DNA of 64,000 bases from Marsupella aquatica (lineage: Eukaryota; Plantae; Marchantiophyta). The stretch covers positions 9,980,287-10,044,286 of the forward strand of contig OZ316899.1 in NCBI GenBank assembly GCA_973895155.1, given 5' to 3'. Each line of letters opens with the position of its first letter. The first letter of the stretch is position 1. The position numbers and the translations under genes are program-made. This document shows positions 194-42,299 of the stretch, one piece after another. The notes below the pieces were generated by a model. That model ran no database searches. It worked only from the letters and a program-made list of their open reading frames with translations, and was not told the origin of the DNA.

Positions 194-3100
194 CTACTTG
201 TCCATCCTTTGGAGATAACTTTGGACAGTTTGTAGAACATTTCGAGGAATCTTCAAACCTCTGCCTGCCATGTTTTCTTCTTTCATGCCAGATTTAAAAC
301 CATACATTGCAGAATTTGCATACTGCCAATGTTGAGCGTTCTCACCAAACCTTGGATCTCGTTCCCATGTCTTAGTGGACATGAAGCAGTTTAGATACCG
401 TGCACTCTCAGTCACATCAAGTTTAGAGTGTTTAGGCCTCCACCATTCGACTGGAAATGTTGGAGCATATTGTTGAGGCAGAGGAGGTTTGTTGGAGATG
501 TAGTTGGGACTTCATGCTTAGGGTCCACCAAAACCCAAAGCTCTCACCAACCAAAAATGACCTCCATCATTTTTATTCTCCCAGTCATCCTCAGGTCGAA
601 GAAATACAAAGTTCCATTCACGAATATCCTGTAGGGGAATCCATCGTCCTTGTTCTCTCTCAGCTCGAGATCCAACAAATGGTGCTGCTTGATCTTCCAT
701 CTCTTCCAAGACCTCATTTTGAAGAGCCATCATCTCCACATTCTCCTCATCTTCACTTGGAGGACCACTTTGTTCTGGTTGGTTGACCTTGTAACCAGTG
801 TCGTGGTTAGTCTTAGGCCAAAATCCATTTTTCAAGGGAAATTGAGTACTTCCCTCCCCTTCTAGTGAGAGCCCATTTGTCAACAACTCCACAATTCTCT
901 CCCAATATTTCACAAGAGGAAATCTTTCCTTATATGCTATAGATGTCTCATCAGTGCAACTCCTTCTAAAAAAATCAAGGTACTTGTTAAGAAATGGGAT
1001 AATCTCTTCAGATTTTTTGTGTATCTCTCCAATGGATTTAGCCTAAGGGCTCTCCACTAGTAAAAGAAGAGAATTTGTTGTCAAATCTGTTGCTCAAATG
1101 CACCTTCCTCCAACTGGAGCCCAAGCTTGCTTTACATGAGACTCATACTGAAATATTGGTACATTATCTCTCATAGAGAAAAGAAATGATACGGGATTTG
1201 AGTGACCTTGAATATCTTTAACTTTGAAAGTTTGAAGATATTCTTTGTAAGATGCAACTTCTTGTATCAATCTGGGAACTGGATGAATGCTCTCACATTC
1301 CCAAACCTCTGCCATAAGAGCAAGGAGAGTTGCAACTTCCTTGTGCTGAACTTGATATGATATCTTCGAAAAGAGTGCCTCAACATCTTTGTGTGTATGA
1401 CTAACCATTAGAAAAGACATTTGAACAGTTTCAAATACTCCTCTACTCACAAGCTCACTACAAAATGCCATGACAGTCTGGTTTTTGTTATCCTTTGCTG
1501 AGTTATCCATTTGCAGTGTTAGGTGCCTTGGCAAGGGCTTGAAAGATGGACTGCCTTGTTCCCCATACATGTCCCCTCCTTGATCCTCACCATGTTGGGT
1601 GGAGACCGTCTCCATCTGACTCTCGGCTGCATCTTCAGAACCAATATACCTATTCATTGGAATACTCTTTGGTTCCAAATATCCCTTAAAAAATGCATCA
1701 AAGTCAAGAAGGGCTTGAAAGAAAGGTCTATGAGGTTCCAAATAAAGGCCATCCAACATGTCACCTGTCTTGTCTCCATTGTACTCTTCAAGGTCTCGAA
1801 GACACTTAGCCAAGGATGTCACTGTGAAATCAGCATCTCCTGGGCAAAGGCCAGTGACACTAAAGTGTGCATAGACTCCTGGATCCCTTCTGTGGGTCAA
1901 CATCCCTATGAGAGCAATAGGTAGTGGCATCCCATGACCCGAAAGCGATTTAGGAGTACTGACCATTTTTGGAATCCACGTCTTTGCTTGATCCATCTTG
2001 TCGTGAATGCTGCAAAGATATTCCCCTGGATGTTGCTTAGCCATCACTTGATGAGCATAGTAAACATATCTACGTGACATCTGCTCATGAAGATGTTGCG
2101 CTTGTTTTTCTTCAATTTGAGCACGCTCTTTTTTCCTTCGTTCTCGCATCAAACTATCTTTGTATTCACAACAAAGAGTACACTTGGCAAATGCACCATC
2201 TTTATGGAAACTAAAGTTTGCGAATGATTTGCTCCAAATCTTGTATAGAGTATTCTTTGTAACTGGAGGAAGCCCCTCTTCCTTCATCTTTGTTCTCACA
2301 TCTTCCAAAATCTCCAACTTCTTGTAACATGCTGGAAGACGATACTCAATGGAGTCTGTCCCATGAGCCCCAGCATAAGGTATATGAGGGATGGGCTCTG
2401 CATTTCGAGTCAAAAAATCCTCCAACAGAGCTTGTGCATGCAAGGTATTTGACCGTGTTTTCATGGAGCCCGTGTTTCCATGGAACCCAATTTTGCAACC
2501 CTCCACATATCTCCTTTTGTAATCATAATATTTCGTGTGGCTAAAGCCATTGATGATTGCAAATGCATGTCTACATACGACCATACCCTTGAGAACATGG
2601 TGCCCCTTATCATGAACATCATCTTCTCTGTAGTGGAAGAGGTTGAAAATGTGTGATGTTTTTGACTCGCTAGACATCCCATGAAATTATATCCGGATAT
2701 CTTCTATGTCTTCTCTTGGCATAGTCACACAACATTTATGCTTGCAACAATTCTCTCTTTTAATTTCATCAATCGAAGCTTCCGTTGTTTTTGAAACTGC
2801 CTTGGTTTCCAACAACCTTCTCTTCTTTTCAATCGGATCTACATGAGTACTCTTGTTGAAATTGTATGGCCTTGTGCGCGGCATTCCCCTATCATTTACA
2901 TTTGGATAGAGATCATCCCTATCCACCGTCTCCATCCTCTCTGAACCTTCAACCAAAATGTCTGACAAAAATTTCTCATTTGCAAGTAGTTTTGTTGAAT
3001 CAATCCGCCATCGAACCAAAGTAATTACTCCCCTATGGAAATTGGGAAAGTATTGTGATTCCACCACATCTTTCATAGCAATCCCTACATGGTCCTCACC

Positions 3101-3955
3101 AAGGATTTCATCGTCAACCACCGTTGTTTCTTGAGGCACAGTGATGGTCCCCGTGGCAACCCTATTGGTTCGATCTGAACCAATGTATAGTTCGACCAAC
3201 TCTGACATCCAATTTGACCGTTGGAAATAGTCACAATTAGTTTTAGAAATTTCAGCTGAGGGAGACTCCGCAACAAAATTCCGCTCTATGTTGATATCAT
3301 CACCCGCATCCTTCTTTGAGAAACTCTTTCTACTTCGGACATCTGCCACATCCCAGAGAACCCATGAGTCTTTTGCCTCGTCAATTGTTTCAGCCCCGCT
3401 GTGTTTGTAAGGTAAAACCCTACTCCCATGAATGACATTAGTGACCCTCACACTGATCCGTGATTCACTAAGTAAAATGTTGTGACATCTTTCCATTGGA
3501 TTTGTATTGAAAGCAACTCCAAGGGCTACACAACACCCAAAGATGAACATTTCAACCTCATCCCCTTGCCTCAGAGTGGTCGATGAGTCCTCCTCTACAA
3601 TTGGATTGTTTTCCAAATTACTCTCCGGTCGATTTGAACAACTACCTACACTAATGCATTTTTGAGAATTTGTTATCGTTGATAGATATGCGCAAGACAA
3701 ATCCCAAATAATGCAAGAATCAATGGCATCAAAAAGGTTTTCTACCCGAGGCATTGGAAATGGTAGTTTTGTGGTTCAGTCAAAAACTTTCTCAATGAGA
3801 ACGCCCATTTTATTCTCTCTTAACAATATCTTTTGAACACTATCTTGCGGGTTGATTTTTTGAACTTTCCCGCTTGCAACATTGTAACCACCAATTGTCA
3901 ATATCACATTGTCGCCTCTCAAAAATATTCCGGTCATTCCAACAACGTGTTCACC
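194..3955 (-). pseudogene. DDE transposase, DUF7869/Sola-like, broken by stops and frameshifts
   Basis: Collinear ORFs 2687-3754, 1094-2677, 518-913 and 194-415. Motifs CxxC (KCTLCCEYK), IHDKMDQ, LQMDNSAKDNKN and FLMVSHTHKDVEALFS match the DNxxxxNKN...FLxxGHTHEDID core of DUF7869/Sola-type transposases. N-terminal tandem 'VAxG...LP...TIDEAKDSWVLW' units resemble plant-transposon beta domains. Splice acceptor near 3955. Confidence 0.7.
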
Positions 3956-4019
3956 TGCACAATTTGAAATGTAAGGTATTAGTTAACAATGGTCCCAACT
4001 AGGAAGCAGATAGGTGTGA

Positions 4020-5130
4020 ACCCTATCCAAGACAATGCGCAAATAGGGATCATCCCCATCAAGCAAAATAATAGGTCCGTAAAAAATCCTTATCTAGCCC
4101 TAAGATCCCTGATCCCTATTCAGACGTTGGATAGGGATGATCCCTGTCCAGACGGCAGATAGGTTCTGTCACTGTCCAAACAATGGACATAGATGATCCC
4201 TGTAACCGGCGGACAGGGATCATCCCTGTCCAAAATACGGGTAGGGATGATCCCTGTCAGAATAGTGGATAGGGTCTGTCACTGTCCAAACGGCAAACAA
4301 GGATCATCCCTGCCTAGCGGCGGATAGTGTCTATCACTGTCCAAAGGGCGGACACAGCTGATCCCTGTCCAAATGGCGGATAGGGTCTATCACTGTCCAA
4401 ACAATAGACATGGATGATTCAAGGTCCGGATCACTTAGGATCACTCAGCGGTCCTATCTGAAAGTAAAACCTTTCATATTGGGTTCCCATAAAGCAAATA
4501 CCTCAAACGGCGGAGAGGGATCATCCCTATCCAAATGACGGACAAGGATCATCCCCATCCAAATGATGGACAGGGATCATCTCTATCCAAATGGTGGACA
4601 GGGATCATCTCTATCCAAAAGTCGGGCAGGGATCATCCCCATCCAAACGGTGGACAGGGATCATCCCTATCCAAACGGCGGACAGGGATCATCCCCATCC
4701 AAACGGTGGACAAGGATCATCTCTATCCAAAAGGTGGACAAGGATCATCCCCATCCAAATGGTGGACAGGGATCATCTCTATCCAAAAGCCGGAGAGGGA
4801 TCATCCCCATCCAAACGGTGGACAGAGATCATCCCTATCCAAACGGTGGACAGGGATCATCCCTATCCAAAATCCGGACAGGGATCATCCCCATCCAAAC
4901 GGTGGACAAGGATCATCCGTATCCAAAAGCTGGACAGGGATCATCCCCATCCAAACGGTGGATAGGGATCATCTATATCCAAACAGTGGACACACATTAT
5001 TCTTATCCAAAAGCCGGACAGGGATCATCCCCATCCAAACAGTGGACAGGGATCATCTCTATCCAAACGGTGGACAGACATCATTCTTATCCAAACAGCA
5101 CATAGGGATGAACCCTATCAAAACAGCTAA
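4020..5130. repeat. Tandem array (~28-29 bp unit) built on the palindrome GGA(T/C)AGGGAT-C-ATCCCT(A/G)TCC
   Basis: Directly visible, most regular at 4508-5100. GGATAGGGAT is the reverse complement of ATCCCTATCC around a 1-nt centre. Confidence 0.95.
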
Positions 5131-5339
5131 TAGGTATGACCCTTGTACAGACAGTTAACCTCTACACACTAATTTAATGTTTGACCAAAGAAAGGTTGGA
5201 TTGAGATGATCCCAATCGTGAGTTGGGCTGGATACCCCAACCTTAAGTAACTTAGATATACAACTCCTAAATTTGATACCAATGGAATATTCTGGAATTG
5301 AGTTGAAAATTACTTGTAATGGAAATGATTCTTGAACAC

Positions 5340-8300
5340 TGTGATGCCTAGACAGGAATCACTCGGCCAGTTAAGTGGGTAAAGCAGGAAGGCACCCTAG
5401 GAACACCTTAGTATATGGACAAAACAAGGAAAATATAAACAATTAGGGGCAACCATGGAACCCGGGCCGAGGCCGGAGGTAAGGACGTTGAGGGTGAAAA
5501 CTCGATTAGGGTTAGGGCGCGTTAAGCGTCAGCGGCTAGGAAGGATCAACGGGAAGAAGGACCGGCAGAGGAGAGGGGTAAGGAGCGCTTGCAGGAGATG
5601 GTGGCTCATTTGCGAGCACGAACTAGGCAGACGACTACGGGAGGCCAACTACTGTCAGCTGCTTAGGCAAGCACTCAGGGAGAGAGTAGATACCGACGAT
5701 CGACCTAAGGAGGGTATGAGCAACGTCAATCAAGCGGCACATTTCTGGGGATGCCTGTTCGAACGGGCAACTGAGTACATCAAGACTTACGAGGACGAGG
5801 AATCAGAAAGGGCAGCTCGAGAACGGCAGGAGCTCGCTCGATTGTGGGAGCTGCAGAAGACGGCTTTCTTAGGAGGCGAACTCATCAAGGACGAGTTCCT
5901 GTGGACGCCTACTTCCAATCAACTCGACGATCTTCTGTTTTGCAAAGACAGCGTCGTCGGCATCCGAGAGGCCATCAAGAACTGCAACGACATACACTGG
6001 GAATTAAAGGGTAGCACGGAAAGGTGGACCCAGGCAACGGTGCTAGGAGAAACCTCCACGGCAGCAGAGATGAAGAGGAAGGGAGCCGTCAACGATGAAG
6101 CCACCCCGGCAAAAAGAACGAGGTCGGCGGCACCAAAGAAGCCAGCCGGGCAGCAGAGCAGGAGGCAGGGAGAAGCCGAAGAGGAGGAGGTCGATCCCAT
6201 CAAGGCCATTCCAACCAGGGATGACACCTGGAAGGGCTGGGCGGCAACCCTACCGGTGGAGGTGCAACTACATTTTGCACGGGAGGAGGATGCATGCTTT
6301 ACGGCCATGCAGACCAAGAAGTACCAAGGCTTCATGGCCGGATCCGGCTTAGAGGCCTTTGTAAGATTACCATGGCTGAAGCCGGAGGTACCGGAGTCAG
6401 ACCTATTAGAATTCGTGGGGTCATGGGAACCCGAGACCAATTGCACGAGGATATATGGGAAGGATTTCTATCTTACTCCCAAGGTAATTGCCGAAGTGTT
6501 TGGCTTGCCGATAGGCAATAAGACCAAAGTTGATACCAGGAAGACCTTGCCTGACAAGGAGTTCCGGTCGTTCCCCGGGCCATCAACGAAGAATGGCTTC
6601 TTCCGGAACACCTGCACCAACCCGCACATAGGAGAGATGATCGACTTCTTGCGGGTGACCATGCATTGTAACTTGCCGAGGGCAGAGATCGGCAAGGCAC
6701 AGGTCTATCTGGCAGAGAGGCCAGACCCAAGCCGGGACTACAACGGGTACCTCCTCAACCAATTGAAGAAGATCTTAAAGGAGGAGCAGCAGGTAATCGG
6801 CATGGGGAGCGTGTCGCGGCTTGGCTATCACATGCCGCTGTTGTGCCGGTATGCCAGAGGTCAGACTTTTGCCCCAGTACTTCCCCTGCAGGTAAGGGCA
6901 CCCGAGGAAGCTCCAACGCCGAGGCCGTTGGCTGAGAAGCCTCAACCACCTGTTAGCCCTACGATCGAGCAGGTGTTTAGGCCCAGGAAGGAGGACTTGC
7001 CGATGCAGCAACCAGGCATGCAGAGTCTGCTGAAACTACTGGAGAAAGAAAAGAGATCGGCATCGACAACAACAACGGCAACGGCAACAATGCAGGACAC
7101 TACTACAGAGGTAGGCCTACACCGGCTCACAAGAGAAAACCCCTTTGCTGGAGACAAGGAGAGAATCAGGCCGGAATCCAAGCCAGGTGTTCGAATGTAT
7201 GTGGGAATCTCAAGCTCCGAATCTGAGGCAGAATTGCCTGAAGCTCCTACCGACGAAGAGGAGAGGGAGAAGCCGGACGTCCAAGAAGTAGAGGAGGCAG
7301 TGGAGGACTGCAGCCATGATAATTCTGGCTATGGGTCGGACCATCACGTTCCAGGAGTAAGGACCTGTGGCCGGTTTGTCCCCACACTTCCAAGGGTAGT
7401 GCGAGGGGACCCCAACCAGCAGAGTAGCCCTGAGTCTCCCCCACCAGATGTTGCTCCCCCGAGCTTTGACGGCATAAAACAGATGGTGCAGGAATTTCAG
7501 GAGCGAATCAGGCAGGAAGAGGAGGCAGCCCTGGCTAGGGAAAAGGATTTACCAGGAGGAGATTGGCCGGAGGACATCAGGCGGCTAGCCGAAAAAGGAA
7601 GCAAACCTCTAGCCACGATTGAAGAGATCCGCAAGACGGCTTGGGAGCAGAGGCCGCGATGGGCGATGCCGATCACTTCTACTTACTCCACCTACGCTAA
7701 GAATAGAGCCATGGAGTATGGTGAGATGTGTGGGGAACTTGCGCTCGGCATCTTTGGAGAGGAGTTGGAGGTAGGACCCTTTTTCCATAGGGAGCAGTTG
7801 GAGAAGCACCAATTAGAAGAAGCGGTGGCTTTAGAGAGAAGCAAGAAGGACGAGGTCATTCGGCGGCTTAGGAGGATGGAAGCCGAGATTGAAGATCTAA
7901 GGGCGGCCAAGAAAGCCCAAGATGAACTGCGGATTAAACGGCATGAGCTGAACATCATGCAGGGGCAGTTGGACACCGCGCAGGCTGATAATCAGAATAT
8001 CAAGGATAAACTGACTCAGACGCAGGGAGAGTTGGCCGACACGATCAAAGAGAGGGAGAAGTGGAAGCAAGAGCTGAAGAATACAGAGGAGGCCCACATA
8101 ACAGCCAACAGCCGGGCCATGGCGGAGACCCAAAGAAAGGAATGGGCGTTGAAGGGGGAGCTCGAGAAAATCCGCGGAGCCCTTGAGCAGAAGGAGGCCG
8201 AGTTAGGGAAATCCTATCAAGGGATTATGGCGCTACAGTAGGAGCTTGCGTCCCTGACGGCCAGCTTCAAGGCCGACCTAAGGGAGAAGGACAAGATACT

Positions 8301-9992
8301 CGATCAGACTTACGCCAAGATGAACCAGATGGAGTCTGTCATCATTGCAGAGCTCGACAAGGAGCTAAGAGCAACCCGGGAGGAGAGGACTACCTTGAAA
8401 CAAGAACGAGAGGAAGCCCAGAAGGAACTAGAGGAGGCGCGCAAGGACCTGGATGAGACCCAGGAGGAGTTGGAGGAAATCACGAGGAAGATGGAGAACC
8501 TCCAGCGGCGGGCCGACAACCAAACGGAGCGGCTGAAGAAACAAGCCGCAGTATTTAAGTGCTTGTCTTCATCAGGCCCAACTCCAATTGGGGCAACCAA
8601 GTTACCAGGAGTGGTACTGGCCGAAGAAAAAGCCGCGCCACCTGCACCAGTGCCGGAAGTAAGTGGGAAGGGGAAGGGACCAGCTGCCGAACCAGAAAAG
8701 AAGAAGAAGCCTTCAGGGTCAAGGAAACCTTCAGGGTCAAGGAGTAATCCGACTCCACAAGCCGTGGTGACCAAGGAGGTAGAACCAGCACCATCCTCCG
8801 GCATAAATACGGCAATAGATCCCGCTATCATCACAGGTGGGGGTGGTGCGGCCCAAGCCGAACTACTCCGTAATGAGGCCGGTATCCCAGATCCGCCTCT
8901 TGAGCAGGCCAGGGAGACCGTAGCCGAGGCTGAGGCCGTAACCGATTCCCGAGCCGATGCCGACGCCAATGGAGAGTTGACTCAGTCAAGGGCAGGTAAT
9001 CTGTCAGAGAATGAACCTACGGCAGTGGCTGAGGAGGAAGCGTTGGGGGCGTCCATTAAGGATCCACCACCGGTGTCGTGACGGTGCAAGGGCGTCGTTC
9101 CTTTTAGGGAGGGCGGACGTGGAGGGAGGAGGCGTGAGTGGGCAGGGCGGGCGCTGATCTCCAAGTTTAGGATTAGGATCAGGACCAGGAGCGGCCCTGA
9201 CACTTAGCTTAGTGGGATTGCGGTTCCACTGGTAGGAGCAACACTTGTGCTCCTGCCTTGCTGTACATAGGTAGATTCGGGCAAGTAGATTACTGTTAGG
9301 TAGATTAGGCTTACGATGCAAAGAATGGCGGATCCACTACCAGGATAAGTACCTGGGCAGCGGGGAGCTCAGGGCCTCTTTTTTAGCAAGTTTTTAGTTT
9401 GCACCAGCCGGGCTGGGATCAAGTAGTACGAGAAGCTCTCGGTTAGTCATACAGTGACCCTTGTGTATATTCATGTTTCCTCATGCCTAAGAGCTGAATA
9501 GAGTTGGCCTCACGGCTTAGTTCGCAGAGCTTGTGTATGAGATGTACTGTTTGTATGGCAAGTGCATGGTATGACTCAGTCAGAATGAGTCATTTTGCTA
9601 TTTGTGTGTCGCATTAACTTGTGTGAAGAGTGCCCACATCAACCAGAAGGAAGGAAAGTAAGCAGGGGAGTGAGAGTTGGATGTGTCGAGCTGAGAGAGG
9701 TCTTAGCGGCTTAACCAAGCCTATTGGGGATCATTCCGGCGGCGGAATCCAAACATACCTAACAAGACGGAGGGGAAGACAAGGGAAGGCCTAGATTAGG
9801 CCGGCTACGTATCTCATGACCCGATGAAGGATCTGTCCAGTATATGTGTGTAAAATGTTAATAGTAGTAGTAGAAGGTTAGCAGCGTCCCATGCCGCTAA
9901 GCTACGGAAACGGCCTCGCCAAGCGCGAAACCTGCGGGAATCGGCTTGAGCTGGGGGTTTCTTGGGTTTAGGGAGCCATGGGACGCACCACA
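5340..9992 (+). mobile_element. Giant LTR (4653 bp), family 1; 5' LTR of a truncated Gypsy copy
   Basis: Starts TGTGATGCCTAGAC, ends GGACGCACCACA, nearly identical to the LTRs at 15825 and 26683. Followed by PBS and gag start. Confidence 0.95.
5716..9081 (+). pseudogene. LTR-encoded ORF, copy 1 (one CAG>TAG stop at 8239-8241)
   Basis: ORFs 5455-8241 and 8320-9081 are in frame and homologous to the intact 1113-aa ORF at 16198-19539. The frame is open upstream to ATG 5455. Confidence 0.85.
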
Positions 9993-9996
9993 TTTT

Positions 9997-10014
9997 TGGC
10001 GCTAAATGGAGGGG
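9997..10014 (+). promoter_or_regulatory. Primer-binding site (tRNA-Asn-like)
   Basis: TGGCGCTAAATGGAGGGG lies 4 nt after the LTR end and is near-complementary to the plant tRNA-Asn(GUU) 3' end (expected TGGCGCTAGAAGGAGGGG). Confidence 0.75.
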
Positions 10015-10061
10015 GCATTTCTTAAGCCGTGAGATATGAAGTTAGAACGGAAGAGTAGGTA

Positions 10062-10420
10062 ATGACTGACCTTACGCCGAGGGAAGAAAGAGTGATTCAA
10101 CGGGAGAGAGCTCGACTGCAGCAGCTCGCCGGGTGGCATGATACACAGCGACTGAGAGGGGCAGAAAGAGCTGGTAGCTCCGAAACTGGAAGTGGCGTTG
10201 AAGAAGACATACCAGAAGAAGAGTCGGTAAGGAGAAGTGAGTCTCCAACCGACATGGGGGAACCAGAGGCACGGCCAGACGAGAGGCCAGGGACCAGACT
10301 GAGCCAGCGGTCGCGCATACATTACAAGGCATTTCATGGGAGAGGAGATGAGGATCCGGACGAATGGTTGGATGATTTCGAGGGAACCGCTGCAGCAAAT
10401 GGAGAATCGGCCATCAAGAT
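10062..10420 (+). pseudogene. gag: Truncated gag (first ~120 codons)
   Basis: Matches 20530 onward (MTDLTPREE...DPDEWLDDFE) up to ...CCATCAAGAT at 10420, then switches abruptly to host-transposon palindromic repeats. Confidence 0.9.
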
Positions 10421-10429
10421 CAAGATCAA

Positions 10430-10716
10430 TCGGCCTATCCAAGTAGAGGATAGAGATCATCCTTGTCCAATTGCTAATAAAGATCGTCAATATCCTCTGA
10501 TCGAACAAAGATTATCTTTATTAGGAATTGGATAGAGATCATCCCTATCCAAGTAGAGGATAGAGATCATCCCTGTCCAATTGCTAATAAAGATCGTCAA
10601 TATCCTCTGATCGAACAAAGATTATCTTTATTAGGAATTGGACAGAGATCATCCCTATCCAAGTATAGGATAGAGATCATCCCTGTCCAATTGGATAGGG
10701 ATCATCTCTGTCCAAA
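10430..10716. repeat. Palindrome repeats GGA(T/C)AGAGATCATCCCT(A/G)TCC, including a ~100-bp tandem duplication
   Basis: Same motif family as 4020-5130. The block 'attgctaataaagatcgtcaatatcctctgatcgaacaaagattatc...' occurs twice. Confidence 0.9.
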
Positions 10717-10773
10717 CTGTGAGAAAACCTCATCTTTGTTGATTACAAATTAAGATTTTCCAAACTAATATGC

Positions 10774-13505
10774 ATGGATGGGACTATTGCAGGGAGCGAT
10801 CTAAATGGATTGATACCAACAATTTCAGAATCAGATTGCTCCAAGGGAGTCTTGTTGGAGCAGAGCAAACCAGATTTTTGTTGGGGCCTTGAGTTCTCTA
10901 GAGTTGATTTTGATTTCCTTAGCACACCAGAGAGACGGGATCCCATTTTGTGCATAAAGGTCAGAACAGAAGATCAAGAGACTCTTGTACTCGGACCTGT
11001 AGTCTTCAAAGGAATTGAAGGAAGAGGGTTTGTTTCCGTCATTCTTGAGCTCCATGAAATGATACGATGGGTTAAGCTACATCTACCATCAAAGGCGTAT
11101 TCTTCAGAGTTCAATGTTGAGTGGTTTGCTGTTGGAGAACTTGGCGTGATGGCAATGGGATTTTTCCCTAAGTCGTATTCAACTCAAAAGGTGATTGCTG
11201 GAGTGAAGGGGATTCTTCCACTTGACATCATGTATGGGTTTCAATATGTGAAGCTGAATATCCATAAACACTAAGGGAATTATACATTTCCGGTGACATG
11301 GATTTTAAATAATTTGCTTGACAAGGCAGGATTCCTATCTTTGGAATCAGGTGTTTGCCTTGACAAGCAAATTGCATTTGCAGAGGAGTTTGCGATGGAT
11401 AATGCAAAAAAGTGGGTAGAATCATTACCCAAGCCTACAAATGTTGCACCAATAGCGGTGAACGAGCTTCCAGTAGTTGTTAACAAAGAAGTTCCCAAAC
11501 CTAGAAAAATATCTCAAGAGACAACAATAGGGACTGCAGGAACAACGGCTGGGACAAGCACCAAACAAGTGGTAGGGAAGCGAAGACTAAGAGAGAGGAA
11601 GGGTCGCAAGAAAATTGAGACATTGCCGAAGGAACCCGAGAAGAAGCCAGTAGCGAAGAATCAGAAAACTGACAAGACTCTTTTGCGGTGAACCCCTGCG
11701 GACGTACAGATGCTCCCAGAAGATGAGGGAGACAAACTTGATGCCCCTGAGAAGAAGAAGGTCTTAGAAGGAAATGATGTTCTCTAGAGAATAGAGCAGT
11801 ACTATACTTTTGGGATAAATGAACTGTTTTCTATTCCAGTGGAGAAAATTGTGCCTGCACCTACAAGATTATGTTACAGGATGCTCAGTAGTACCCATGT
11901 GAAGCACATAGCCCAATCCATGGTCAAAAACCCTGGACATGAACCTCACGTCGTGGACCTGCTTCCTTATAGTCCGAAGCTTATAAAGTTGCTCCATTTT
12001 GATAGCACGGAGAACGACCGCAAAGACTTTCTTGCAGGAGTGAAGAAAGGCGAGATTGGTTTCTTTGCCATCAGTGGGCAACATTCGGCTAGGGCGGCCA
12101 AGTGGGTTCTCGAATGGGCCAAAACTGATGCCAAGCTCACAGTGTTGGCAAAAAAGTTTAAATACAGGAAGTCTAGATTATTGTCAGACCTTACACCATC
12201 GGCTATATTGGTTGAGCACTCAATGAGATCAAATGCCATCAATTTGACGATGGTGTTTCAATCGTGCTTCAAAGATACAATTGTTCTGCAAGGAAACAAT
12301 TCCTTGAATGCGGAGGACCAAGAAAGCCAAAGAACGGGGACAACAAGTCAAACGCCCAAGAGAATCAAAAATTTCAGGTGAGAAACATTTTTCTTGTTTG
12401 GACAGAGATGGTCTCTGTCCAAGAGTGTGATTGTCCATTCTAGAGATTTCTCTTCCTTTTACTTTTGGTTATGACTTGGATGGAGATGGTCTCTGTCCAA
12501 CAAGCAAGTGATAGTTTGTTGTCAAATCTCATTGATTGTAGATAACTTATTTTCCCCTAATTTTGACTGTAGGATTATTTGGCATTGGCAAGGATGACCA
12601 TGGGGAGAAAAGACTTGAAAAATGTATATTGGTTGCTCTTTGCCGAGAATGATCTTTTCAAGCTCTGGCGGTTAGTGTGCCAGATGTGGATTGATGGACA
12701 TCTTCCTGATGGAACTGGTACACAGGGAAACAAAAGGTCCGAAAAGGGTATAACGGTCACAATGTTTCGTTGTTTTGATGGTGAAATCTCAAGTAGAGAT
12801 TTGACCAGAATTTTGAACAAGGTGAAGTCAGGTCAGGTTTTATTGAAGAAAGATCCTACAAATAAGTCAGATGTTCCAGCAATGGAGGACTTTGCAAAGG
12901 AGGTGAAGATATTGATCAAACTGAAGTCTCTTGTTGGAGATTACTACTTCAAGAAGGATCCAAAAAACTTCCCAGCAGATAGTGATTGGGTTAAAGTAAT
13001 TGAGGTCCTCCCATTGTTAGGTGTCGAGTCGGAGTTGAACAGGTGCCGAAGAGCGGCTGGTGAAGTATGGTTGACAAATTTATTGAAGTCTAATCATACA
13101 AAGGAGAGTGAGATATTGCCAATGACATTGGTGATGCGTCTAGATGATATTTACTGTCAGAAGTTTGGCGGTGGGACAAGTTCTCGGACCCAACCGTGGG
13201 TCACATTTCTTAGTAACAACCTAATGAAGACAGTGGATCCGGAGTCGTTGGAAGAACAATCTCCAACATGCCCTCTTGCAATTGTTGATTTCAACCGACT
13301 TCAACAGAAGGAGTGGACCGAAGCAGAGATTTTGGTACTCTTCCAATACATAGTAGAGCTACCACGGAATCCCACCATTGTTGTGATGATAACTGTCCAT
13401 CCGGGTTACCTTGTACTAAATGTCCTAAGCGCTCTTCGTAAATTAGGACATTCAAAAACTCTGACTGTTCACATTGAGTATGGGAGTTATTACCGAGATG
13501 ATCAA
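10774..13505 (+). pseudogene. ParB/Sulfiredoxin-like domain gene of the DUF7869 transposon (spliced, multiple stops, 3' truncated)
   Basis: ORFs 10774, 11293 and 11839 share one frame, separated by single stops. ParB-like pattern IPVEKI...YRMLSSTHVKHIAQSM...FFAISGQHSARAA. GT-AG intron 12378-12572. Exon 2 continues to 'CPLAIVDF' and is cut off by CACTA sequence. Confidence 0.6.
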
Positions 13506-14240
13506 CTCCTTTCTGAAAAGAACATGCCCATCAGGACAGGCATGGATGGAATCATAGTTCAAGCCAAGATTAGATATGCATCTTTTTGCCTCGTACATGT
13601 TCTTGGGAAAAATATTACCATTTGGTAGCACAGTTGTTTGCAAGAATGCCAACAACTCAGAAACTAAAACGTTGGGGACATTGTGGTTGCCGTAGATGTT
13701 TAGAAACATGATGACAAATCCTAGTTTAGAACATTTGCTACCAGGTTACAAAGACTTCCTGCCTTCCTGTATTTGCAGGGGAGAGGCAAACATCCCATCA
13801 TGCCCAGGGGTTTCCTACCCTATCTCAAACTCATCAAGAGGCTCTTCGACAGGGGGCACACTTGCATCTGCAGCTGTATCCTCTTCATTGTCCAGCCCAT
13901 CATGAAATGCATCCAAGTCTTGGAAGATGTCTCTCACCATCTCTTCCACATGAACTCCTTCGTCACGTGGTGTTGCCTAAGCACCATCCCGTTGGAGAGC
14001 TGACAACCCACAGAGACCAGCTACAACATTTTCAAATGCACCAGGCAGAACCTCACTTGCCCATCTTGTAGCATTGGCAGCATCAAATTCTAACCTCCAC
14101 TCCTCGTCGGAAGAATCTTCCTCTGCAGGATCATTCCAAACTCGATGTCGTGGATCTCTTCCATGAACCGCGATATGCCGCCAAACCTCATTCAAACCCC
14201 TGGTACGGGATCCTTAGCAAATTGCACAAGGACATCTCAT
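13505..14240 (-). pseudogene. En/Spm (CACTA) transposase 5' fragment
   Basis: RCPCAIC...EVWRHIAVHG resembles the transposase-associated domain. LPNGNIFPKNMYEAKRCISNLGLNYDSIHACPDGHVLFR is the classic Transposase_21 N-terminal motif. Confidence 0.8.
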
Positions 14241-15231: not shown

Positions 15232-15918
15232 GTGCCTCTAGCACCACCTCCGGCCACTCCCATACGAAGCCGCACTTGCTCACCTACACGACCGCTACTC
15301 AACGGTCCTCACTGTCTGCACAAACAACCAAGCCCCTTGGTAAGTAACCCCTCCGGATCTAGAACTCGCCCAGTCTAGCATCCTAACTCAAGCTCAACAG
15401 ACGTTGGTAAATAGTCAGTGATAGGTCCTCCCAATGCCATAAGCCGGAACCAGAACCCACGCCCACTGTCCGTCTAGGACAGCTCCTTCCTTGGGCGCGG
15501 CTCGGGTTCCCCCTCGTACCTATCCATCACCAACTGACCGCCCTGACCTCAAGACATGCTCATGGCCCAAATAGCGTAGCTTGTCCCAAACTTGTCTCAA
15601 CACGCCGGGACCAGAATGGCCCCGACTCTAACAACCGCTCCCGGTTTGCCCCACTGATGGTCTAGGGACCGATCGCCCTTGGGACTCAGCCTCCATACCT
15701 ACTTGGCCTTGCCTCCCCAATGCAAGCTCCCTTGGGAGGCTGAACGCGGCTTGGCTGTTGTTCGACAGGATTTGGCAAGCGGGCAAGCTAACACCCACAA
15801 ACCACGAGAACCCATGGCACCCCCTGTGATGCCTAGACAGGAATCACTCGGCCGGTTAAGTGGGTAAAGCAGGAAGGCACCCTAGGAACACCTTAGTATA
15901 GTGACAAAACAAGGAAAA

Positions 15919-15924
15919 TATAAA
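15919..15924 (+). promoter_or_regulatory. Candidate TATA box near the 5' end of the LTR
   Basis: TATAAA ~95 bp into the LTR, upstream of the LTR ORF, conserved in all three family-1 LTRs. Confidence 0.4.
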
Positions 15925-16197
15925 CAATTAGGGGCAACCATGGAACCCGGGCCGAGGCCGGAGGTAAGGCTAAGGGTGAAAACCCGATTAGGGTTAGGGC
16001 GCGTTAAGCGTCGGCGGCTAGGAAGGATCAACGGGAAGAAGGACCGGCAAAGGAGAGGGGTAAGGAGCGCTTGCAGGAAATAGTGGCTCATTTGCGAGCA
16101 CGAACTAGGCAGACGACTACGGGAGGCCAACTACTGTCAACTGCTTAGGCAAGCACTCGGGGAGAGAGTAGATACCGACGATCAACCTAAGGAGGGT

Positions 16198-19100
16198 ATG
16201 AGCAACGTCAATCAAGCGGCACATTTCTGGGGATGCCTGTTCGAACGGGCAACTGAGTACATCAAGACTTACGAGGACGAGGAATCAGAAAGGGCAGCTA
16301 GAGAACGGCAGGAGCTCGCTCGATTGTGGGAGCTGCAGAAGACGGCTTTCTTAGGAGGCAAACTCATCAAGGACGAGTTCCTGTGGACGCCTACTTCCAA
16401 TCAACTCGACGATCTTCTGTTTTGCAAAGACAGCGTCGTCGGCATCCGAGAGGCCATCAAGAACTGCAACGACATACACTGGGAATTAAAGGGTAGCACG
16501 GAAAGGTGGACCCAGGCAACGGTGCTAGGAGAAACCTCCACGGCAGCAGAGATGAAGAGGAAGGGAGCCGTGAACGATGAAGCCACCCCGGCAAAAAGAA
16601 CGAGATCGGCGGCACCAAAGAAGCCAGCCGAGCAGCAGAGTAGGAGGCAGGGAGAAGCCGAAGAAGAGGAGGTCGATCCCATCAAGGCCATTCCAACCAG
16701 GGATGACACCTGGAAGGGCTGGGCGGCAACCCTACCGGTGGAGGTGCAACTACATTTTGCACGGGAGGAGGATGCATGCTTTACGGCCATGCAGACCAAG
16801 AAGTACCAAGGCTTCATGGCCGGATCCGGCTTGGAGGCCTTTGTAAGATTACCATGGCTGAAGCCGGAGGTACCGGAGTCAGACCTATTAGAATTCGTGG
16901 GGTCATGGGAACCCGAGACCAATTGCACGAGGATATATGGGAAGGATTTCTATCTTACTCCCAAGGTAATTGCCGAAGTGTTTGGCCTGCCGATAGGCAA
17001 TAAGACCAAAGTTGATACCAGGAAGACCTTGCCTGACAAGGAGTTCCGGTCGTTCCCCGGGCCATCAACAAAGAATGGCTTCTTCCGGAACACCTGCACC
17101 AACCCGCACATAGGAGAGATGATCGACTTCTTGCGGGTGACCATGCATTGTAACTTGCCGAGGGCAGAGATCGGCAAGGCACAGGTCTATCTGGCAGAAA
17201 GGCCAGACCCAAGCCGGGACTACAACGGGTACCTCCTCAACCAATTGAAGAAGATCTTAAAGGAGGAGCAACAGGTAATCGGCATGGGGAGCGTGTCGCG
17301 GCTTGGCTATCACATGCCGCTGTTGTGCCGGTATGCCAGAGGTCAGACTTTTGCCCCGGTACTTCCCCTGCAGGTAAGGGCACCCGAGGAAGCTCCAACG
17401 CCGAGGCCGTTGGCTGAGAAGCCTCAACCACCTGTTAGTCCTACGATCGAGCAGGTGTTTAGGCCCAGGAAGGAGGACTTGCCGATGCAGCAACCAGGCA
17501 TGCAGAGTCTGCTGAAACTACTGGAGAAAGAAAAGAAATCGGCATCGGCAACAACAACGGCAACGGCAACAATGCAGGACACTACTACAGAGGTAGGCCT
17601 ACACCGGCTCACAAGAGAAAACCCCTTTGCTGGAGACAAGGAGAGAATCAGGCCAAAATCCAAGCCAGGTGTTCGAATGTACGTGGGAACCTCAAGCTCC
17701 GAATCTGAGGCAGAATTGCCTGCAGCTCCTACCGACGAAGAGGAGAGGGAGAAGCCGGACGTCCAAGAGGTAGAGGAGGCAGTGGAGGACTGCAGCCATG
17801 ATAATTCCGGCTATGGGTCGGACCATCACGTTCCAGGAGTAAGGACCTGTGGCCGGTTTGTCCCCACACTTCCAAGGGTAGTGCGAGGGGACCCCAACCA
17901 GCAGAGTAGCCCTGAGTCTCCCCCACCAGACGTTGCCCCCCCGAGCTTCGACGGCATAAAACAGACGGTGCAGGAATTTCAGGAGCGAATCAAGCAGGAA
18001 GAGGAGGCCGCCCTGGCTAAGGAAAAGGATTTACCAGGAGGAGATTGGCCGGAGGACATCAGGCGGCTAGCCGAAAAAGGAAGCAAACCTCTAGCCACGA
18101 TTGAAGAGATCCGCAGGACGGCTTGGGAGCAGAGGCCACGATGGGCGATGCCGATCACTTCTACTTACTCCACCTACGCTAAGAATAGAGCCATGGAGTA
18201 TGGTGAGATGTGTGGGGAACTTGCGCTCGGCATCTTTGGAGAGGAGTTGGAGGTAGGACCCTTTTTCCATAGGGAGCAGTTGGAGAAGCACCAATTAGAA
18301 GAAGCGGTGGCTTTAGAGAGAAGCAAGAAGGACGAGGTCATTCGGCGGCTTAGGAGGATGGAAGCCGAGATTGAAGATCTAAGGGCGGCCAAGAAAGCCC
18401 AAGATGAACTGCGGATTAAACGACATGAGCTGAACATCATGCAGGGGCAGTTGGACACCGCGCAGGCTGATAATCAGAATATCAAGGATAAACTGACTCA
18501 GACGCAGGAAGAGTTGGCCGACACGATCAAAGAGAGGGAGAAGTGGAAGCAAGAGCTGAAGAATACAGAGGAGGCCCACATAACAGCCAACAGCCGGGCC
18601 ATGGCGGAGACCCAAAGAAAGGAATGGGCGTTGAAAGGGGAGCTCGAGAAAATCCGCGGAGCCCTTGAGCAGAAGGAGGCCGAGTTAGGGAAATCCTATC
18701 AAGGGATTATGGCGCTGCAGCAGGAGCTTGCGTCCCTGACGGCCAGCTTCAAGGCCGACCTAAGGGAGAAGGACGAGATGCTCGAACAGACTTACGCCAA
18801 GATGAATCAGATGGAGTCTGTCATCATTGCAGAGCTCGACAAGGAGCTAAGAGCAACCCAGGAGGAGAGGGCTACCTTGAAGAAGGAATTGGAGGAAGCC
18901 CACAGGGAGCAGGAGGAGGCCAAAAACGAGCTGGAGGGAGCACGTAAGGACCTGGATGAAACCCAAGAGGAGTTGGAGGAAATCACGAGGAAGATGGAGA
19001 ACCTACAGCGGCGGGCCGACAACCAAACTGAGCGGCTGAAGAAACAAGCCGCAGTATTTAAATGCTTAGCTGCAGCAGGTCCATCTCCCGTTGGGACAAA

Positions 19101-19539
19101 CCAGTTACCAGGGGTGGTAATTGCCGAAGGACAGGCCGCGCCACCTGCACCAGTGCCGGAAGTAAGTGGGAAGGGGAAGGGACCAGATGCCGAGCCACCA
19201 ACGAAGAAGAAGCGGAAACCTTCAAGGTCAAGGAGTAATACGACTTCACAGGCCGTGGTGATCAAGGAGGTAGACCCAGCACCGACCCCAGACAGGGTCA
19301 CGGCTAAGGATCCAACTACCCTAGGGGAAGGGGAAGCCGAAGCCGTGGGAGTGGCTGAGGCCGAAGCCGTGGGTATTGCCGAGGCCGGTGTCGAGGCTGA
19401 AGCCGAAGGTGGACCCAGTCAGGCCGAGGGAGAGTTGACTCGGTCAAGGGCAGGTAATCTGTCAGTAGGCGGGCCAACGGCAGTGGCTGAGGGGGAAGTG
19501 TTGGGGGCGTCCATTGAGGATCCACCACCGGTGTCGTGA
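16198..19539 (+). CDS. Intact LTR-encoded 1113-aa protein: plant-transposon (Transposase_32/Athila-ORF/PMD-like) domain + Pro/acidic linker + long coiled coil
   Basis: Uninterrupted ORF lying wholly inside the LTR. GLEAFVRLPW...LLEFVGSW...TRIYGKDFYLTPKVIAEVFGLP resembles the 'EF...V.G..V..S...I...FGLP' core of retrotransposon extra-ORF domains. Residues ~700-960 are heptad E/K/L-rich. Confidence 0.85.
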   Translation: MSNVNQAAHFWGCLFERATEYIKTYEDEESERAARERQELARLWELQKTAFLGGKLIKDEFLWTPTSNQLDDLLFCKDSVVGIREAIKNCNDIHWELKGSTERWTQATVLGETSTAAEMKRKGAVNDEATPAKRTRSAAPKKPAEQQSRRQGEAEEEEVDPIKAIPTRDDTWKGWAATLPVEVQLHFAREEDACFTAMQTKKYQGFMAGSGLEAFVRLPWLKPEVPESDLLEFVGSWEPETNCTRIYGKDFYLTPKVIAEVFGLPIGNKTKVDTRKTLPDKEFRSFPGPSTKNGFFRNTCTNPHIGEMIDFLRVTMHCNLPRAEIGKAQVYLAERPDPSRDYNGYLLNQLKKILKEEQQVIGMGSVSRLGYHMPLLCRYARGQTFAPVLPLQVRAPEEAPTPRPLAEKPQPPVSPTIEQVFRPRKEDLPMQQPGMQSLLKLLEKEKKSASATTTATATMQDTTTEVGLHRLTRENPFAGDKERIRPKSKPGVRMYVGTSSSESEAELPAAPTDEEEREKPDVQEVEEAVEDCSHDNSGYGSDHHVPGVRTCGRFVPTLPRVVRGDPNQQSSPESPPPDVAPPSFDGIKQTVQEFQERIKQEEEAALAKEKDLPGGDWPEDIRRLAEKGSKPLATIEEIRRTAWEQRPRWAMPITSTYSTYAKNRAMEYGEMCGELALGIFGEELEVGPFFHREQLEKHQLEEAVALERSKKDEVIRRLRRMEAEIEDLRAAKKAQDELRIKRHELNIMQGQLDTAQADNQNIKDKLTQTQEELADTIKEREKWKQELKNTEEAHITANSRAMAETQRKEWALKGELEKIRGALEQKEAELGKSYQGIMALQQELASLTASFKADLREKDEMLEQTYAKMNQMESVIIAELDKELRATQEERATLKKELEEAHREQEEAKNELEGARKDLDETQEELEEITRKMENLQRRADNQTERLKKQAAVFKCLAAAGPSPVGTNQLPGVVIAEGQAAPPAPVPEVSGKGKGPDAEPPTKKKRKPSRSRSNTTSQAVVIKEVDPAPTPDRVTAKDPTTLGEGEAEAVGVAEAEAVGIAEAGVEAEAEGGPSQAEGELTRSRAGNLSVGGPTAVAEGEVLGASIEDPPPVS

Positions 19540-20464
19540 CGGTGCAAGGGCGCCGTTCCTTTTAGGGAGGGCGGACGTGGAGGGAGGAGGCGTGAGTGGG
19601 CAGGGCGGGCGCGGATCTCCACGTTTAGGATTAGGATTAGAACCAGGAGCGGCCCTGACACTTAGCTTAGTGGGATTGCGGTTCCACTGGTAGGAGCAAC
19701 ACTTGTGCTCCTGCCTTGCTGTACATAGGCAGATTCGGGCAAGTAGATTACTGTCAGGTAGATTAGGCTTACGATGCAAAGAATGGCGGATCCACTACCA
19801 GGATAAGTACCTGGGCAGCGGGGAGCTCAGGGCCTCTTCTTTAGCAAGTTTTTAGTTTGCACCAGCCGGGCTGGGATCAAGTAGTACGAGAAGCTCTCGG
19901 TTAGTCATACAGTGACCCTTGTGTATATTCATGTTTCCTCATGCCTAAGAGCTGAATAGAGTTGGCCTCACGGCTTAGTTCGCAGAACTGGTGTATGAGA
20001 TGTACTGTTTGTATGGCAAGTGCATGGTATGACTCAGTCAGAATGAGTCATTTTGCTATTTGTGTGTCGCATTAACTTGTGTGAAGAGTGCCCACATCAA
20101 CAGAAGGAAGGAAAGTAAGCAGGGGAGTGAGAGTTGGATGTGTCAAGCTGAGAGAGGTCTTAGCGGCTTAACCAAGCCTATTGGGGATCATTCCGGCGGC
20201 GGAATCCAAACATACCTAACAAGACGGAGGGGAAGACAGGGGAAGACAGGGGAAGACCTATATTAGGCCGGCTACGTATCTCATGACCCGATGAAGGATC
20301 TGTCCAGTATATGTGTGTAAAATGTTAATAGTAGTAGTAGAAGGTTAGCAGCGTCCCATGCCGCTAAGCCGCGGAAACGGCCTCGCCAAGCACGAAACCT
20401 GCGGGAATCGGCTTGAGCTGGGGGGTTTCTTGGGTTTAGGGAGCCATGGGACGCACCACATTTT

Positions 20465-20482
20465 TGGCGCTAGATGGAGGGG
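20465..20482 (+). promoter_or_regulatory. Primer-binding site (tRNA-Asn-like)
   Basis: TGGCGCTAGATGGAGGGG immediately after the LTR; one mismatch to the complement of the plant tRNA-Asn 3' end. Confidence 0.8.
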
Positions 20483-20529
20483 GCATTTCTTAAGCCGTGA
20501 GATATGAAGTTAGAACGGAAGCGTAGGTA

Positions 20530-36869: not shown

Positions 36870-37010
36870 CCAGAATCAAATGGCCGAGCTGGAGAGGATC
36901 GTGTGCGACATTCAGAGGAGATAGTAGTGGCGACTTAGAGCGAAGAGAGAGCTGGGGTCGAAGCTAGCGCGTGGACTGATGGACTGGTGCACTACAAAGG
37001 GTTGGCTCCC

Positions 37011-37018
37011 CTTTTATA
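37011..37018 (-). promoter_or_regulatory. Candidate TATA box (TATAAAAG) upstream of the solo-LTR ORF
   Basis: Consensus TATA ~140 bp upstream of ATG 36869, followed by a pyrimidine-rich leader. Confidence 0.5.
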
Positions 37019-37988
37019 CCTTGAGGGCTCGATCCCCCGACGTCTCCTCGACGCCCATAGGCTGAACCGCTCACGCTTGTGGTGTACCAGCCACTTCGCC
37101 AGTCTGAGTCAGCGCGTGTCAGTGGCCGCTTCTTAAGTACATTATACGGACCCGAGGGAGGGGCCCCTCCATGCTCGTAACCCGGGTGTGCGAATAGCGA
37201 CCCGCCGCCAGTCCGAACCTGAATTCCCCCTTATTGCCTAATGATGTCCTACCCATAATGATTACCTAAATACTATCGTTATGCTAATAATAGCGGCCTA
37301 AGACACTCCTAACGCGCATGCTAAGCGCAGTTAGACCGAATCACTCATTAACCGCCATACCGGCGGCGTCACAATGGGTTCACCTGACAATACAAGGACA
37401 ATGAAATTCCTGCTTTTTGAGTTGATCCGACCCACTGGTGCTCAGGTCCAATTTTGATAGGTATAGGGGATATGTGAACAATCCGTACTAGGCACCTGCA
37501 CGGATGCAGGACATTGTTTGAATATACTACAAAATCCATATCAAAGGTGAAATGAAGTGCAACCAACTTGTCATGGCACATACATATTTTGTTGTAAAGG
37601 AGGATACATTCAATGATAAACTTATAGGGCAATTTGATTAATTGCATGCCTGATAATTTATACGCTTAAAACTTAGAAGTCCTGTTTTAATTTAGCAGTC
37701 TGATGAGAGTGTTTATGAAAATGACCACTCAGCCTAAATACTTCCAAGAAGGCTTGTAAGGATAAGTTTTTATAGGCATGTACCCAGCCACTGATGCCAG
37801 AGCACAAGATAAGTGTTGCCTATATAAACTCGCCTACCCAACTCCTTTTCAAAATTGAATCTCTGCAATCTCCAAAAATAGTACATCCACATCAGGTGCA
37901 CTGTTTAGTTTCACAGCCAAGATATGTGATCTCTCACAGGAGTGCACGAGGTAGGATCAATGGCATGGCAATGACAATAAAATATCCA

Positions 37989-41180: not shown

Positions 41181-42299
41181 GTAGTGCGGGTGCAAGTTCC
41201 CAATTTTGAAACAATTTGGCTCATTTTATGTCCCGGCCGAGGGACTCCTGGAGTTTATGTATTGAGTTTCTAGGTCAAGATGCTTAATATAAGGAAATTC
41301 AATTTTCACTTCGTTCCCAACTTCTATTAATTGAATATACACAAGCTGGAAGCAAGAAGACAAGCCACAATCTAGCATCTTAGCCAAACACATTCGTCCC
41401 GACAAAGCAAAACTACAATCACATAGTGCGAGTCGTGTCTGCACTGGCAACCCCAGTGAGACTGATCAGCATTTGGACTGCATCATTGTCTAGAGCTAGC
41501 AGGGGAAGGAATCAACATAGATAGCAGTGGAAGGTGCAGTGGAGATAGCATGGGGACAGGAAAGGAAATGCAGGATCCTTAAGCATAAATTTCCAAAAAT
41601 GGAACAACAGGAAATGAAGAATAGGCATTGAAGCGGTCAACTGGACAAACATTGTAACAAGGCAGCAAGCATTGGATTAAGAAGATCCAAGGTTTCATCA
41701 GCAGCAGCAAGGTTTCATCAACAATGGCATTGTGAGACAAATCACTCCTTACAAATTTCTACAGAGGTCCTCCCCACTTGCAGCTCCTCGGCCAGCCTAG
41801 ATTTCTTGTAAGACAGATTTCTTGTTTGGTGAGGAAAGATCAAAAAGCAACTGATCAATGCCTTACATAAGAGCTGGATGCAGCCTTGTCTCACATTTAA
41901 TGTTAAACTGAATGAAAGACATTATGTGCATGCACACAAGGAAGACATGAATATAATTAAGGTAGGTTTTAAGGAGCGGAGTCAGCAGTTGCCCGGGAGC
42001 TTGCAATCGGACTTAGAAGGTTCAAATTGAAGCGCCATTAGTTTGGCGTGGTCAAGAGATGTATTCAGTAAATAAATGTTGATCAGGGATACTCACCTCT
42101 TTTGAATGTATTCCAGCTCCAGGATACTGACTCAGCTAAGCCCAACTGGACAGAAGTCACTCAGATCCACAAAAAAGTAAAGATTCACCTCCAAGCCGGA
42201 AGCCAATCACTTCAGTAGAGCAGCTTCTGGACGGAACCAACTTTGCTCAGCCCCGAGGGGAGATAATCCATCAGTTATCAGTCACCCCCCTTCTTTTTC

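Follow-up and report, generated by a model that had tools for sequence, protein, structure and literature searches.

The concept of a ParB-like accessory gene carried by a DNA transposon has already been published for Sola1, Plavaka and Mutator elements of algae. In the brown alga Ectocarpus, the giant Sola1 transposon Sola1-1_Ec32 encodes its transposase on one strand and a ParB-like/DNA-methyltransferase protein on the other, and the authors propose that the latter binds and modifies its own element (PMC12477816). The PAG3 protein of Plavaka elements from the red alga Bostrychia has an N-terminal ParB-like domain, and tandem inverted-repeat arrays lie beside its gene across families; PAG3 homologues are found in Plavaka and Mutator elements of Chondrus, and self-binding has been proposed (bioRxiv 10.1101/2025.02.11.637652). 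Here we describe a land-plant member of this group, from the liverwort Marsupella aquatica (Marchantiophyta). The window, meaning the whole stretch of DNA that was analyzed, spans 64,000 nt (assembly GCA_973895155.1, contig OZ316899.1, positions 9,980,287-10,044,286 of the forward strand), and coordinates are window positions unless a locus label (L002, L005, L007, L009, L011 or L012) is stated. Within it, a transposase pseudogene with a DUF7869 domain (356-3754, minus strand) and a two-exon stretch of a ParB-like accessory gene (10774-13490, plus strand) diverge from arrays of a palindrome. The element meets the algal pattern: a ParB-like accessory gene in a DNA transposon beside family-specific inverted-repeat arrays. 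It is a decayed copy, truncated on both sides, of a family of liverwort cut-and-paste DNA transposons defined by the DUF7869 transposase, and we consider it somewhat probable that, by analogy with known systems, its accessory protein would be a self-recognition module acting on the palindromes of its own element. Our literature search returned no paper linking transposon-borne ParB-like genes with palindrome arrays to liverworts and, to our knowledge, the self-binding idea, raised for red, green and brown algae, has never been tested.

The two genes and their arrangement can be followed in detail. Pfam DUF7869 (PF25273) is matched by the open reading frame (ORF) at 1094-2677 on the minus strand (E 3e-39, 135 bits against a gathering cut-off of 26), and a second minus-strand ORF, 2687-3754, lies in frame with it across a single stop codon (2687-2689). 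Another in-frame stop is located at 1094-1096, and minus-strand coding homology to relatives extends past it to ~356 in tblastx comparisons. Because in-frame stops interrupt continuous coding homology, we interpret ~356-3754 as one transposase pseudogene, whose product is 57% identical to that of L012 and 35-52% identical to that of L007 over several aligned pieces. On the opposite strand, exon 1 of the accessory gene (10774-12378) comprises three ORFs in one frame (10774-11274, 11293-11691 and 11788-12378) that are colinear with P0001, an uninterrupted relative of 510 residues, and we therefore read it as a single exon interrupted by three nonsense mutations, whose in-frame stops fall at 11272, 11689 and 11785. 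The exon encodes an N-terminal region that is conserved among relatives and to which no function is assigned, followed by a basic linker and a ParB/sulfiredoxin (Srx)-fold domain at 11788-12378. A GT..AG intron (12379-12572) separates it from exon 2 (12573-13490; 48% identity to P0073 and 40% to L012), in which a helical region precedes the stretch ‘CPLAIVDFNR ... VHIEYGSYY’. Once a nested retrotransposon fragment is removed, transposase and accessory gene stand head-to-head over ~1.9 kb, mostly palindromes. This architecture had been pointed out in a first-pass annotation of the letters, and the Pfam match together with the mapping of ORFs and sites confirms it. The four loci with enough flanking sequence, L005 and L007 from Riccia sorocarpa and L011 and L012 from ENA assemblies, likewise pair a minus-strand transposase of DUF7869 type with a plus-strand ParB-like gene, and DUF7869 is annotated on the transposase neighbors of L007 and L011. 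That the ParB-like gene belongs to the transposon is thus supported by this shared layout. The window DNA is eukaryotic and transposon-dense, and its liverwort assignment is supported by the fetched relatives, since several of these originate from Riccia sorocarpa (GCA_046195345.1, named in PMC11923412) and one, a relative of a protein from a second element in the window, from Calypogeia fissa (n=1).

The palindrome was searched for on both strands with the 21-mer of the first-pass annotation, allowing up to three mismatches. Over the whole window 51 strand-matches were obtained, corresponding to 29 distinct sites where none is expected, and not a single site was found outside 2904-10713. One copy is embedded in the transposase gene (2904-2924), 22 are spread over 4129-5064, mostly in a 28-bp tandem array, and six occupy 10448-10713. 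The left block of sites, between the divergent genes (4110-5143), is made up of a part with a 111-bp period (4110-4404) and the 28-bp tandem array itself (4504-5124); the right block (10427-10715) is positioned directly upstream of the ParB-like gene. Two variant palindromes are present in the intron, at 12400-12420 and 12478-12498, and the first of these reads GGACAGAGA-TGG-TCTCTGTCC, with perfect arms in a 9+3+9 format. The arrays and the intron copies on which the earlier observation was built are therefore real (29 sites plus two variants), but the exact consensus quoted for them, GGATAGGGATCATCCCTATCC, never occurs in the window: the closest site differs from it by one mismatch, and the consensus computed from the array is GGACAGGGATCATCCCTATCC.

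Each of four lineages possesses a palindrome of its own. Besides the window motif, we found GGATCGAGA-N3-TCTCGATCC in L012 (47 sites), GCTCGACA-N3-TGTCGAGC in L002 (15 sites) and GGGGACGCGTCCCC in L005 (20 sites), with a chance expectation of ~0 for each count. The four motifs are mutually exclusive: when they are cross-counted over the loci the matrix is strictly diagonal: the owners hold 19, 40, 15 and 20 sites, and every other entry is 0. L002 and L012 stem from one assembly (ERZ22147080), yet their palindromes differ. The closest relative of the window element, L012, whose ParB domain is 47% identical, has the same 9+3+9 format and the same 28-bp period, and its half-site GGATCGAGA departs from the GGACAGGGA of the window at 3/9 positions; a distant Riccia lineage (26% identity) uses an unrelated 14-mer palindrome. 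The places where the sites are found are common to the lineages, namely the divergent intergenic region, the intron after the ParB-like exon and, once or twice, the transposase gene. L002, L005 and L012 hold their own palindromes in the intron equivalent to 12379-12572, and in relatives they also appear in later introns. Single sites are dispersed outside the arrays as well (2904 and 12400 in the window; 2420, 9291 and 9761 in L012). An array period of 27-29 bp is common to three lineages with unrelated palindromes (window 4504-5124; L005 2876-2982 and 10977-11172; L012 3725-3879, 4933-5389 and 7069-7285), and this may be a sign that the spacing is constrained to ~2.7 helical turns and is not a product of chance. 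The earlier reading is supported in this respect: no palindrome is shared between lineages, the positions of the sites coincide, and the site most like that of the window belongs to its closest relative.

The peptide initially described as ParB-like maps to 11833-12110. An exhaustive HMMER search retrieves 72 relatives of this domain; an earlier word-index search with the 180-residue exon had come back empty, which was a length-window artefact. An AlphaFold2 model built with the alignment of the relatives has a predicted local distance difference test (pLDDT) score of 86.9, with low confidence for model residues 157-197. Its best structural match is ParB of M. xanthus (7bnk_A, residues 37-132; Z 10.1, root-mean-square deviation (rmsd) 2.3 Å over 95 residues), and the top 12 matches are all N-domains of ParB, Noc, PadC or KorB (Z 8.3-10.1); Srx and serine-kinase branches come next (Z 5-7). 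Foldseek places Noc, ParB, sulfiredoxin, PadC and KorB at the top (E 7e-3 to 5e-2), and the ESM Atlas model of the Riccia sorocarpa homologue P0054 is nearest to ParB_N clusters, with template-modeling (TM) scores of 0.62-0.63. In addition, the near-invariant family motif S-G-Q-H-S-x-x-A-A has the same G...A spacing (G97, A103) as the GxxRxxA box of ParB. Based on these models, the core domain of the accessory protein is predicted to have the ParB/Srx N-domain fold, a prediction that holds, with limits. The likeness to the bacterial and plasmid clamp systems ParB/parS, Noc/NBS and KorB/OB would then consist of the N-domain fold (Z 8.3-10.1, rmsd 2.3-3.9 Å, 91-102 residues), the spacing within the GxxRxxA box and the clustering of palindromes 14-21 bp long close to the gene. 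As a separate observation, the Atlas neighbors of P0054 include the fungal family DUF3723 (PF12520, mostly Ascomycota), with a feature score of 0.87 against a lead threshold of 0.9 and TM scores of 0.34-0.41. DUF3723 is a recurrent accessory gene of the giant Starship transposons of fungi, and judging from the models a ParB-fold link of this family is possible.

How might such a protein serve its element? We infer DNA binding, the part of the protein that would read DNA and the downstream effect by analogy. The accessory protein would dimerize and recognize the palindromes of its own element, as ParB, Noc and KorB do with parS-type sites, would load at the arrays and would control the element in cis and sister copies in trans. 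One potential effect is that it sets the expression of the two divergent genes by autoregulation, in the manner of KorB-type regulators. Another is that it counters host silencing, as do the VANC proteins, unrelated to it, that VANDAL elements encode in Arabidopsis. Protein and site would change together, so that subfamilies might be kept from cross-talk. We judge VANC to be the closest functional analogue in land plants; VANC proteins reportedly have tandem-repeat targets, and protein and motif are said to diverge from family to family. These accessory proteins of Mutator-like elements are reported to recognize short motifs within non-coding DNA of their own family (PMC5735166; PMC10398659). 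They are not ParB-fold proteins, their motifs are short direct repeats rather than palindromes and their function has been shown by experiment, all of which sets them apart from the liverwort protein. A more ambitious version of self-recognition, which we put forward tentatively and regard as open to considerable doubt, would make the system a eukaryotic counterpart of ParB/parS. A ParB-fold protein devoid of the arginine patch would read a subfamily-private palindrome of 14-21 bp, nucleate on 28-bp-spaced arrays in promoter and introns and, with a dead methylase module and a partner resembling phosphatases of the C-terminal domain (CTD), shield its own copies against silencing or tune them, while protein-site co-evolution would prevent cross-reaction within a genome.

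A number of observations count against self-recognition, and the first group concerns the element and its sites. The copy in the window is dead, with in-frame stops in both genes, a split array and an accessory gene that is cut at ~13490. Most sites in the window are imperfect and derive from one amplified 28-bp unit, so the copy number is partly satellite expansion. Among the 29 sites, perfect symmetry is seen only at 4211; the remaining ones carry 1-3 arm mismatches, and the deviations amount to 60 transitions versus 7 transversions. Since the array units have asymmetries in common, much of the copy number is attributable to tandem amplification of already mutated units, as in an old, decaying copy. 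L011, moreover, keeps the genes and has no clear palindrome, only 45-bp direct repeats. A homogenized 28-bp satellite of asymmetric units, variation dominated by transitions and a locus that retains its genes without the palindrome would all suit a reading in which the arrays are neutral, hairpin-prone minisatellites with fast turnover, private to each lineage through drift and tandem amplification. We deem this decidedly unlikely, because four lineages independently keep a palindrome and not an arbitrary repeat, in the same places down to the same intron and with the 27-29-bp period recurring in three of them, and because isolated sites are scattered beyond the arrays. An action at the RNA level can also be envisaged, in which transcribed arrays form hairpins that feed or decoy small-RNA silencing; the inverted repeats do lie in transcribed non-coding parts, the introns and a probable 5′ leader. 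With arms of 7-9 nt and loops of 0-3 nt they are too short for Dicer substrates, and they also fill the non-transcribed divergent promoter, which makes this explanation highly improbable.

The second group of objections concerns the protein, whose exons 1 and 2 were searched and folded separately and not as one spliced protein. Searches of Pfam, NCBIfam and PHROGs and a phmmer search of the PDB with the ParB-like exon of the window gave no ParB match, Pfam ParB_N (PF02195) is matched by 0/37 aligned family members, and the family profile of 37 sequences found no match among PDB sequences. As every sequence search is blank, ParB-likeness is a matter of structure: the label proposed at first holds for the fold, given the AlphaFold model and its Z of 10.1, and does not extend to a sequence-level match. 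The arginine patch of GxxRxxA is absent, its central arginine being replaced by a near-invariant serine (S100), and this replacement makes CTP-clamp (cytidine triphosphate) chemistry doubtful. Structure searches with both exons revealed no helix-turn-helix and no other domain for reading DNA, and the structural match covers ParB residues 37-132 only. Again unlike ParB, Noc and KorB, the liverwort protein, with its G-Q-H-S-x-x-A, has no ParA partner and is encoded by an intron-containing eukaryotic gene. The palindromes could instead be bound by the transposase or by a host protein, or act as internal enhancer-like sites for transposition or transcription, and the ParB-like protein could have another role, for example a nucleotide-dependent enzymatic or regulatory one like those of the ParB/Srx-fold proteins sulfiredoxin, serine kinase and DndB. 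That no DNA-reading domain was found in it speaks for this possibility. Transposase and accessory gene both co-diverge with the palindromes, a covariation that fits either of them as the binder; G-Q-H-S resembles the G-x-H-R motif type of Srx and DndB more than it does the arginine patch of ParB; one member (alignment A3) of the ParB-like family of the second element, described below, matches DndB at E 0.028; and sequence-specific transcriptional activation by a Mutator transposase is reported in a 2026 preprint. We nevertheless regard this alternative as rather unlikely. The best structural matches are the DNA clamps ParB, Noc and KorB, with the enzymes scoring lower, the sites are in the promoter and introns, whereas transposases usually bind the ends of an element, and transposon superfamilies unrelated to one another repeatedly pair a ParB-like gene with inverted-repeat arrays next to it.

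In intact relatives the accessory gene encodes the N-terminal region, the ParB/Srx-fold domain, the helical region and, as its tail, a degenerate part resembling beta-class methylases. The residues ‘CPLAIVDF’ (~13270-13293) had been thought to begin a methyltransferase-like domain, which is plausible by position, but the matches of relatives are sub-threshold and fall in a part lost from the window. Exon 2 of the window does not match Pfam N6_N4_Mtase (PF01555); the Riccia relative P0066 attains 17.6 bits with this family, for which the cut-off is 26.7, and only the C-terminal part containing motif I is covered. An ORF of L009 matches the NCBIfam DNA-methyltransferase model PRK13699 at a sub-threshold E of 0.089. 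In both relatives the methylase-like part lies beyond the truncation point of the window copy. With the equivalence of positions set by inspection only, the catalytic motif IV, (D/N/S)PP(Y/F/W), is not kept, the candidate position reading DFNR in the window and DFSQ, DFSR, DFAR or DTTS elsewhere, and the S-adenosylmethionine (AdoMet) motif I, FxGxG, is not kept either, relatives reading YSGGYA or FSGGVF. If the C-terminus of the accessory protein descends from a methylase, then it would seem to be a dead one, because the catalytic positions are conserved in no member. We considered ‘VHIEYGSYY’ of the window as a motif I and rejected it, as the motif-I-like ‘VLDAYSGGYA’ of L009 is ~130 residues further along, past the truncation. 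Nor do we claim a methylase or helix-turn-helix fold for exon 2: its model is poor (pLDDT 65), and Foldseek and a wide structure search gave only generic alpha/beta matches (Z <=6), none above noise. Downstream of the ParB-like gene, L007 (12797-15352) and L011 (13724-14623) have a NIF/CTD-phosphatase-like gene, and another is found at 4508-5218 of L009 (PF03031, E 1e-7), a contig that holds accessory genes only. The methylase-like C-terminus and the NIF-type gene are missing from the window copy because of its truncation.

Both ends of the window copy are missing. The element was labeled Sola-like in the first-pass annotation; Sola1 elements have terminal inverted repeats (TIRs) and a 4-bp target-site duplication as hallmarks. 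At L005 a perfect 20-bp inverted pair, ACAGTGGAACCTGGATAATT at 108-127 and 16286-16305, 16.2 kb apart, brackets the Riccia element and is a candidate TIR; no target-site duplication is present beside it, and no other element ends were found. How close, then, is the liverwort element to its algal counterparts? Both it and Sola1-1_Ec32 are DNA transposons whose divergent accessory gene joins a ParB-like part to a methylase-type one. Sola1-1_Ec32 differs in belonging to a brown alga and in having a methylase predicted to be active (N4-cytosine or N6-adenine), whereas the methylase likeness of the liverwort gene is sub-threshold and the DPPY position reads DFNR, DFSQ or DFAR. Palindromes are a feature of the liverwort element, with no mention of them for Sola1-1_Ec32 in the accessible part of PMC12477816, and the liverwort transposase is classed by DUF7869 alone. 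Plavaka PAG3, compared by description only, is similar in its ParB-like accessory protein, its adjacent inverted-repeat arrays and the idea of self-binding; Plavaka elements form another superfamily, and the effector of PAG3 is a 2-oxoglutarate (2OG)-dependent oxygenase where the liverwort protein has a methylase-like tail.

The window contains a second element (42255-57711), called a Mutator-like element (MULE) in the first-pass annotation, in which divergent genes are again arranged around palindrome arrays. We counted 91 sites of its palindrome, TCGGAGAG-N-CTCTCCGA, every one of them in 42432-57512 and 0 in the DUF7869 element, so the earlier remark that the two layouts mirror each other with different motifs is accurate. 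The MULE label is unconfirmed, Pfam being blank on the large ORFs of the element. For its ParB-like exon (48049-48510, minus strand) 16 relatives were found, among which the motif F-D-G-N-H-R is invariant, and the segment F-W-V-F-D-G-N-H-R aligns to F-F-A-I-S-G-Q-H-S of the accessory protein of the DUF7869 element. From this pair it had been deduced that one module of protein and site moved between transposon superfamilies. Comparison of the two ParB-like families with hhalign (local, global and low-mact) yields a non-significant probability of 0.1-1%, with only 16-18 columns aligned, around G(Q/N)H; tblastn finds no similarity between the rest of the two accessory genes, nor do BLAST and phmmer with the C-terminal parts. 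A PDB profile search with the family of the second element is blank. Because none of these comparisons gives homology, we reject the transfer as unsupported. Independent recruitment of ParB/Srx-fold proteins, or a very old divergence, fits the two elements as well; it is possible that fold class and design are common to both.

The array of the DUF7869 element is divided into its two blocks by a foreign insertion, the nested fragment of a Gypsy-type long terminal repeat (LTR) retrotransposon at 5339-10426 (plus strand; 5.1 kb), which is 94.6% identical to 15824-20894. The fragment comprises an entire 5′ LTR, long ORF included, and the start of gag, followed by a deletion breakpoint, and the ORF at 10062-10535, encoding the N-terminus of gag, matches sequence from 20530 onwards. 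A Gypsy-type element occupies 15824-31318, with LTRs of ~4.6 kb each. Each LTR holds a long ORF; that at 16198-19539 encodes 1113 residues, is coiled-coil rich and has only weak coiled-coil matches in Pfam. A minus-strand ORF of 872 residues (34251-36869, within 33354-37373) resembles by eye the middle of the LTR-encoded ORF and is probably from another, diverged family of LTR elements. On the other side of the DNA transposon, similarity of the accessory gene to relatives ends at ~13490, and the remaining 3′ part of the gene is not found anywhere else in the window. The minus-strand ORF directly past the truncation point (13452-13709) is blank in Pfam at E 0.05; we take it to resemble the N-terminal ‘transposase-associated’ region of plant CACTA elements, for which Pfam gave no confirmation.

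What are the implications of a liverwort transposon with private palindromes? To the published concept our analysis adds a fold test of the accessory domain, a negative homology test against a second element of similar design and a tabulation of five motifs, from four lineages and the second element, in which the palindromes are mutually exclusive and the positions of the sites are conserved across the four lineages. For annotation, it accounts for a class of palindromic satellites and for one family among the ‘hypothetical proteins’ that liverwort assemblies contain. Liverworts, with the genetics of Marchantia and the genomes of Riccia, would make the self-binding idea testable. If the protein does read the palindromes of its own element, the four lineages would represent a natural set of matched protein/site pairs, among them a near-neighbor pair whose half-sites differ at only 3/9 positions. 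Such a set would open a view on the evolution of DNA-recognition specificity of a ParB-fold protein inside a eukaryote, and on how DNA transposons of early land plants may manage their own expression or escape silencing.

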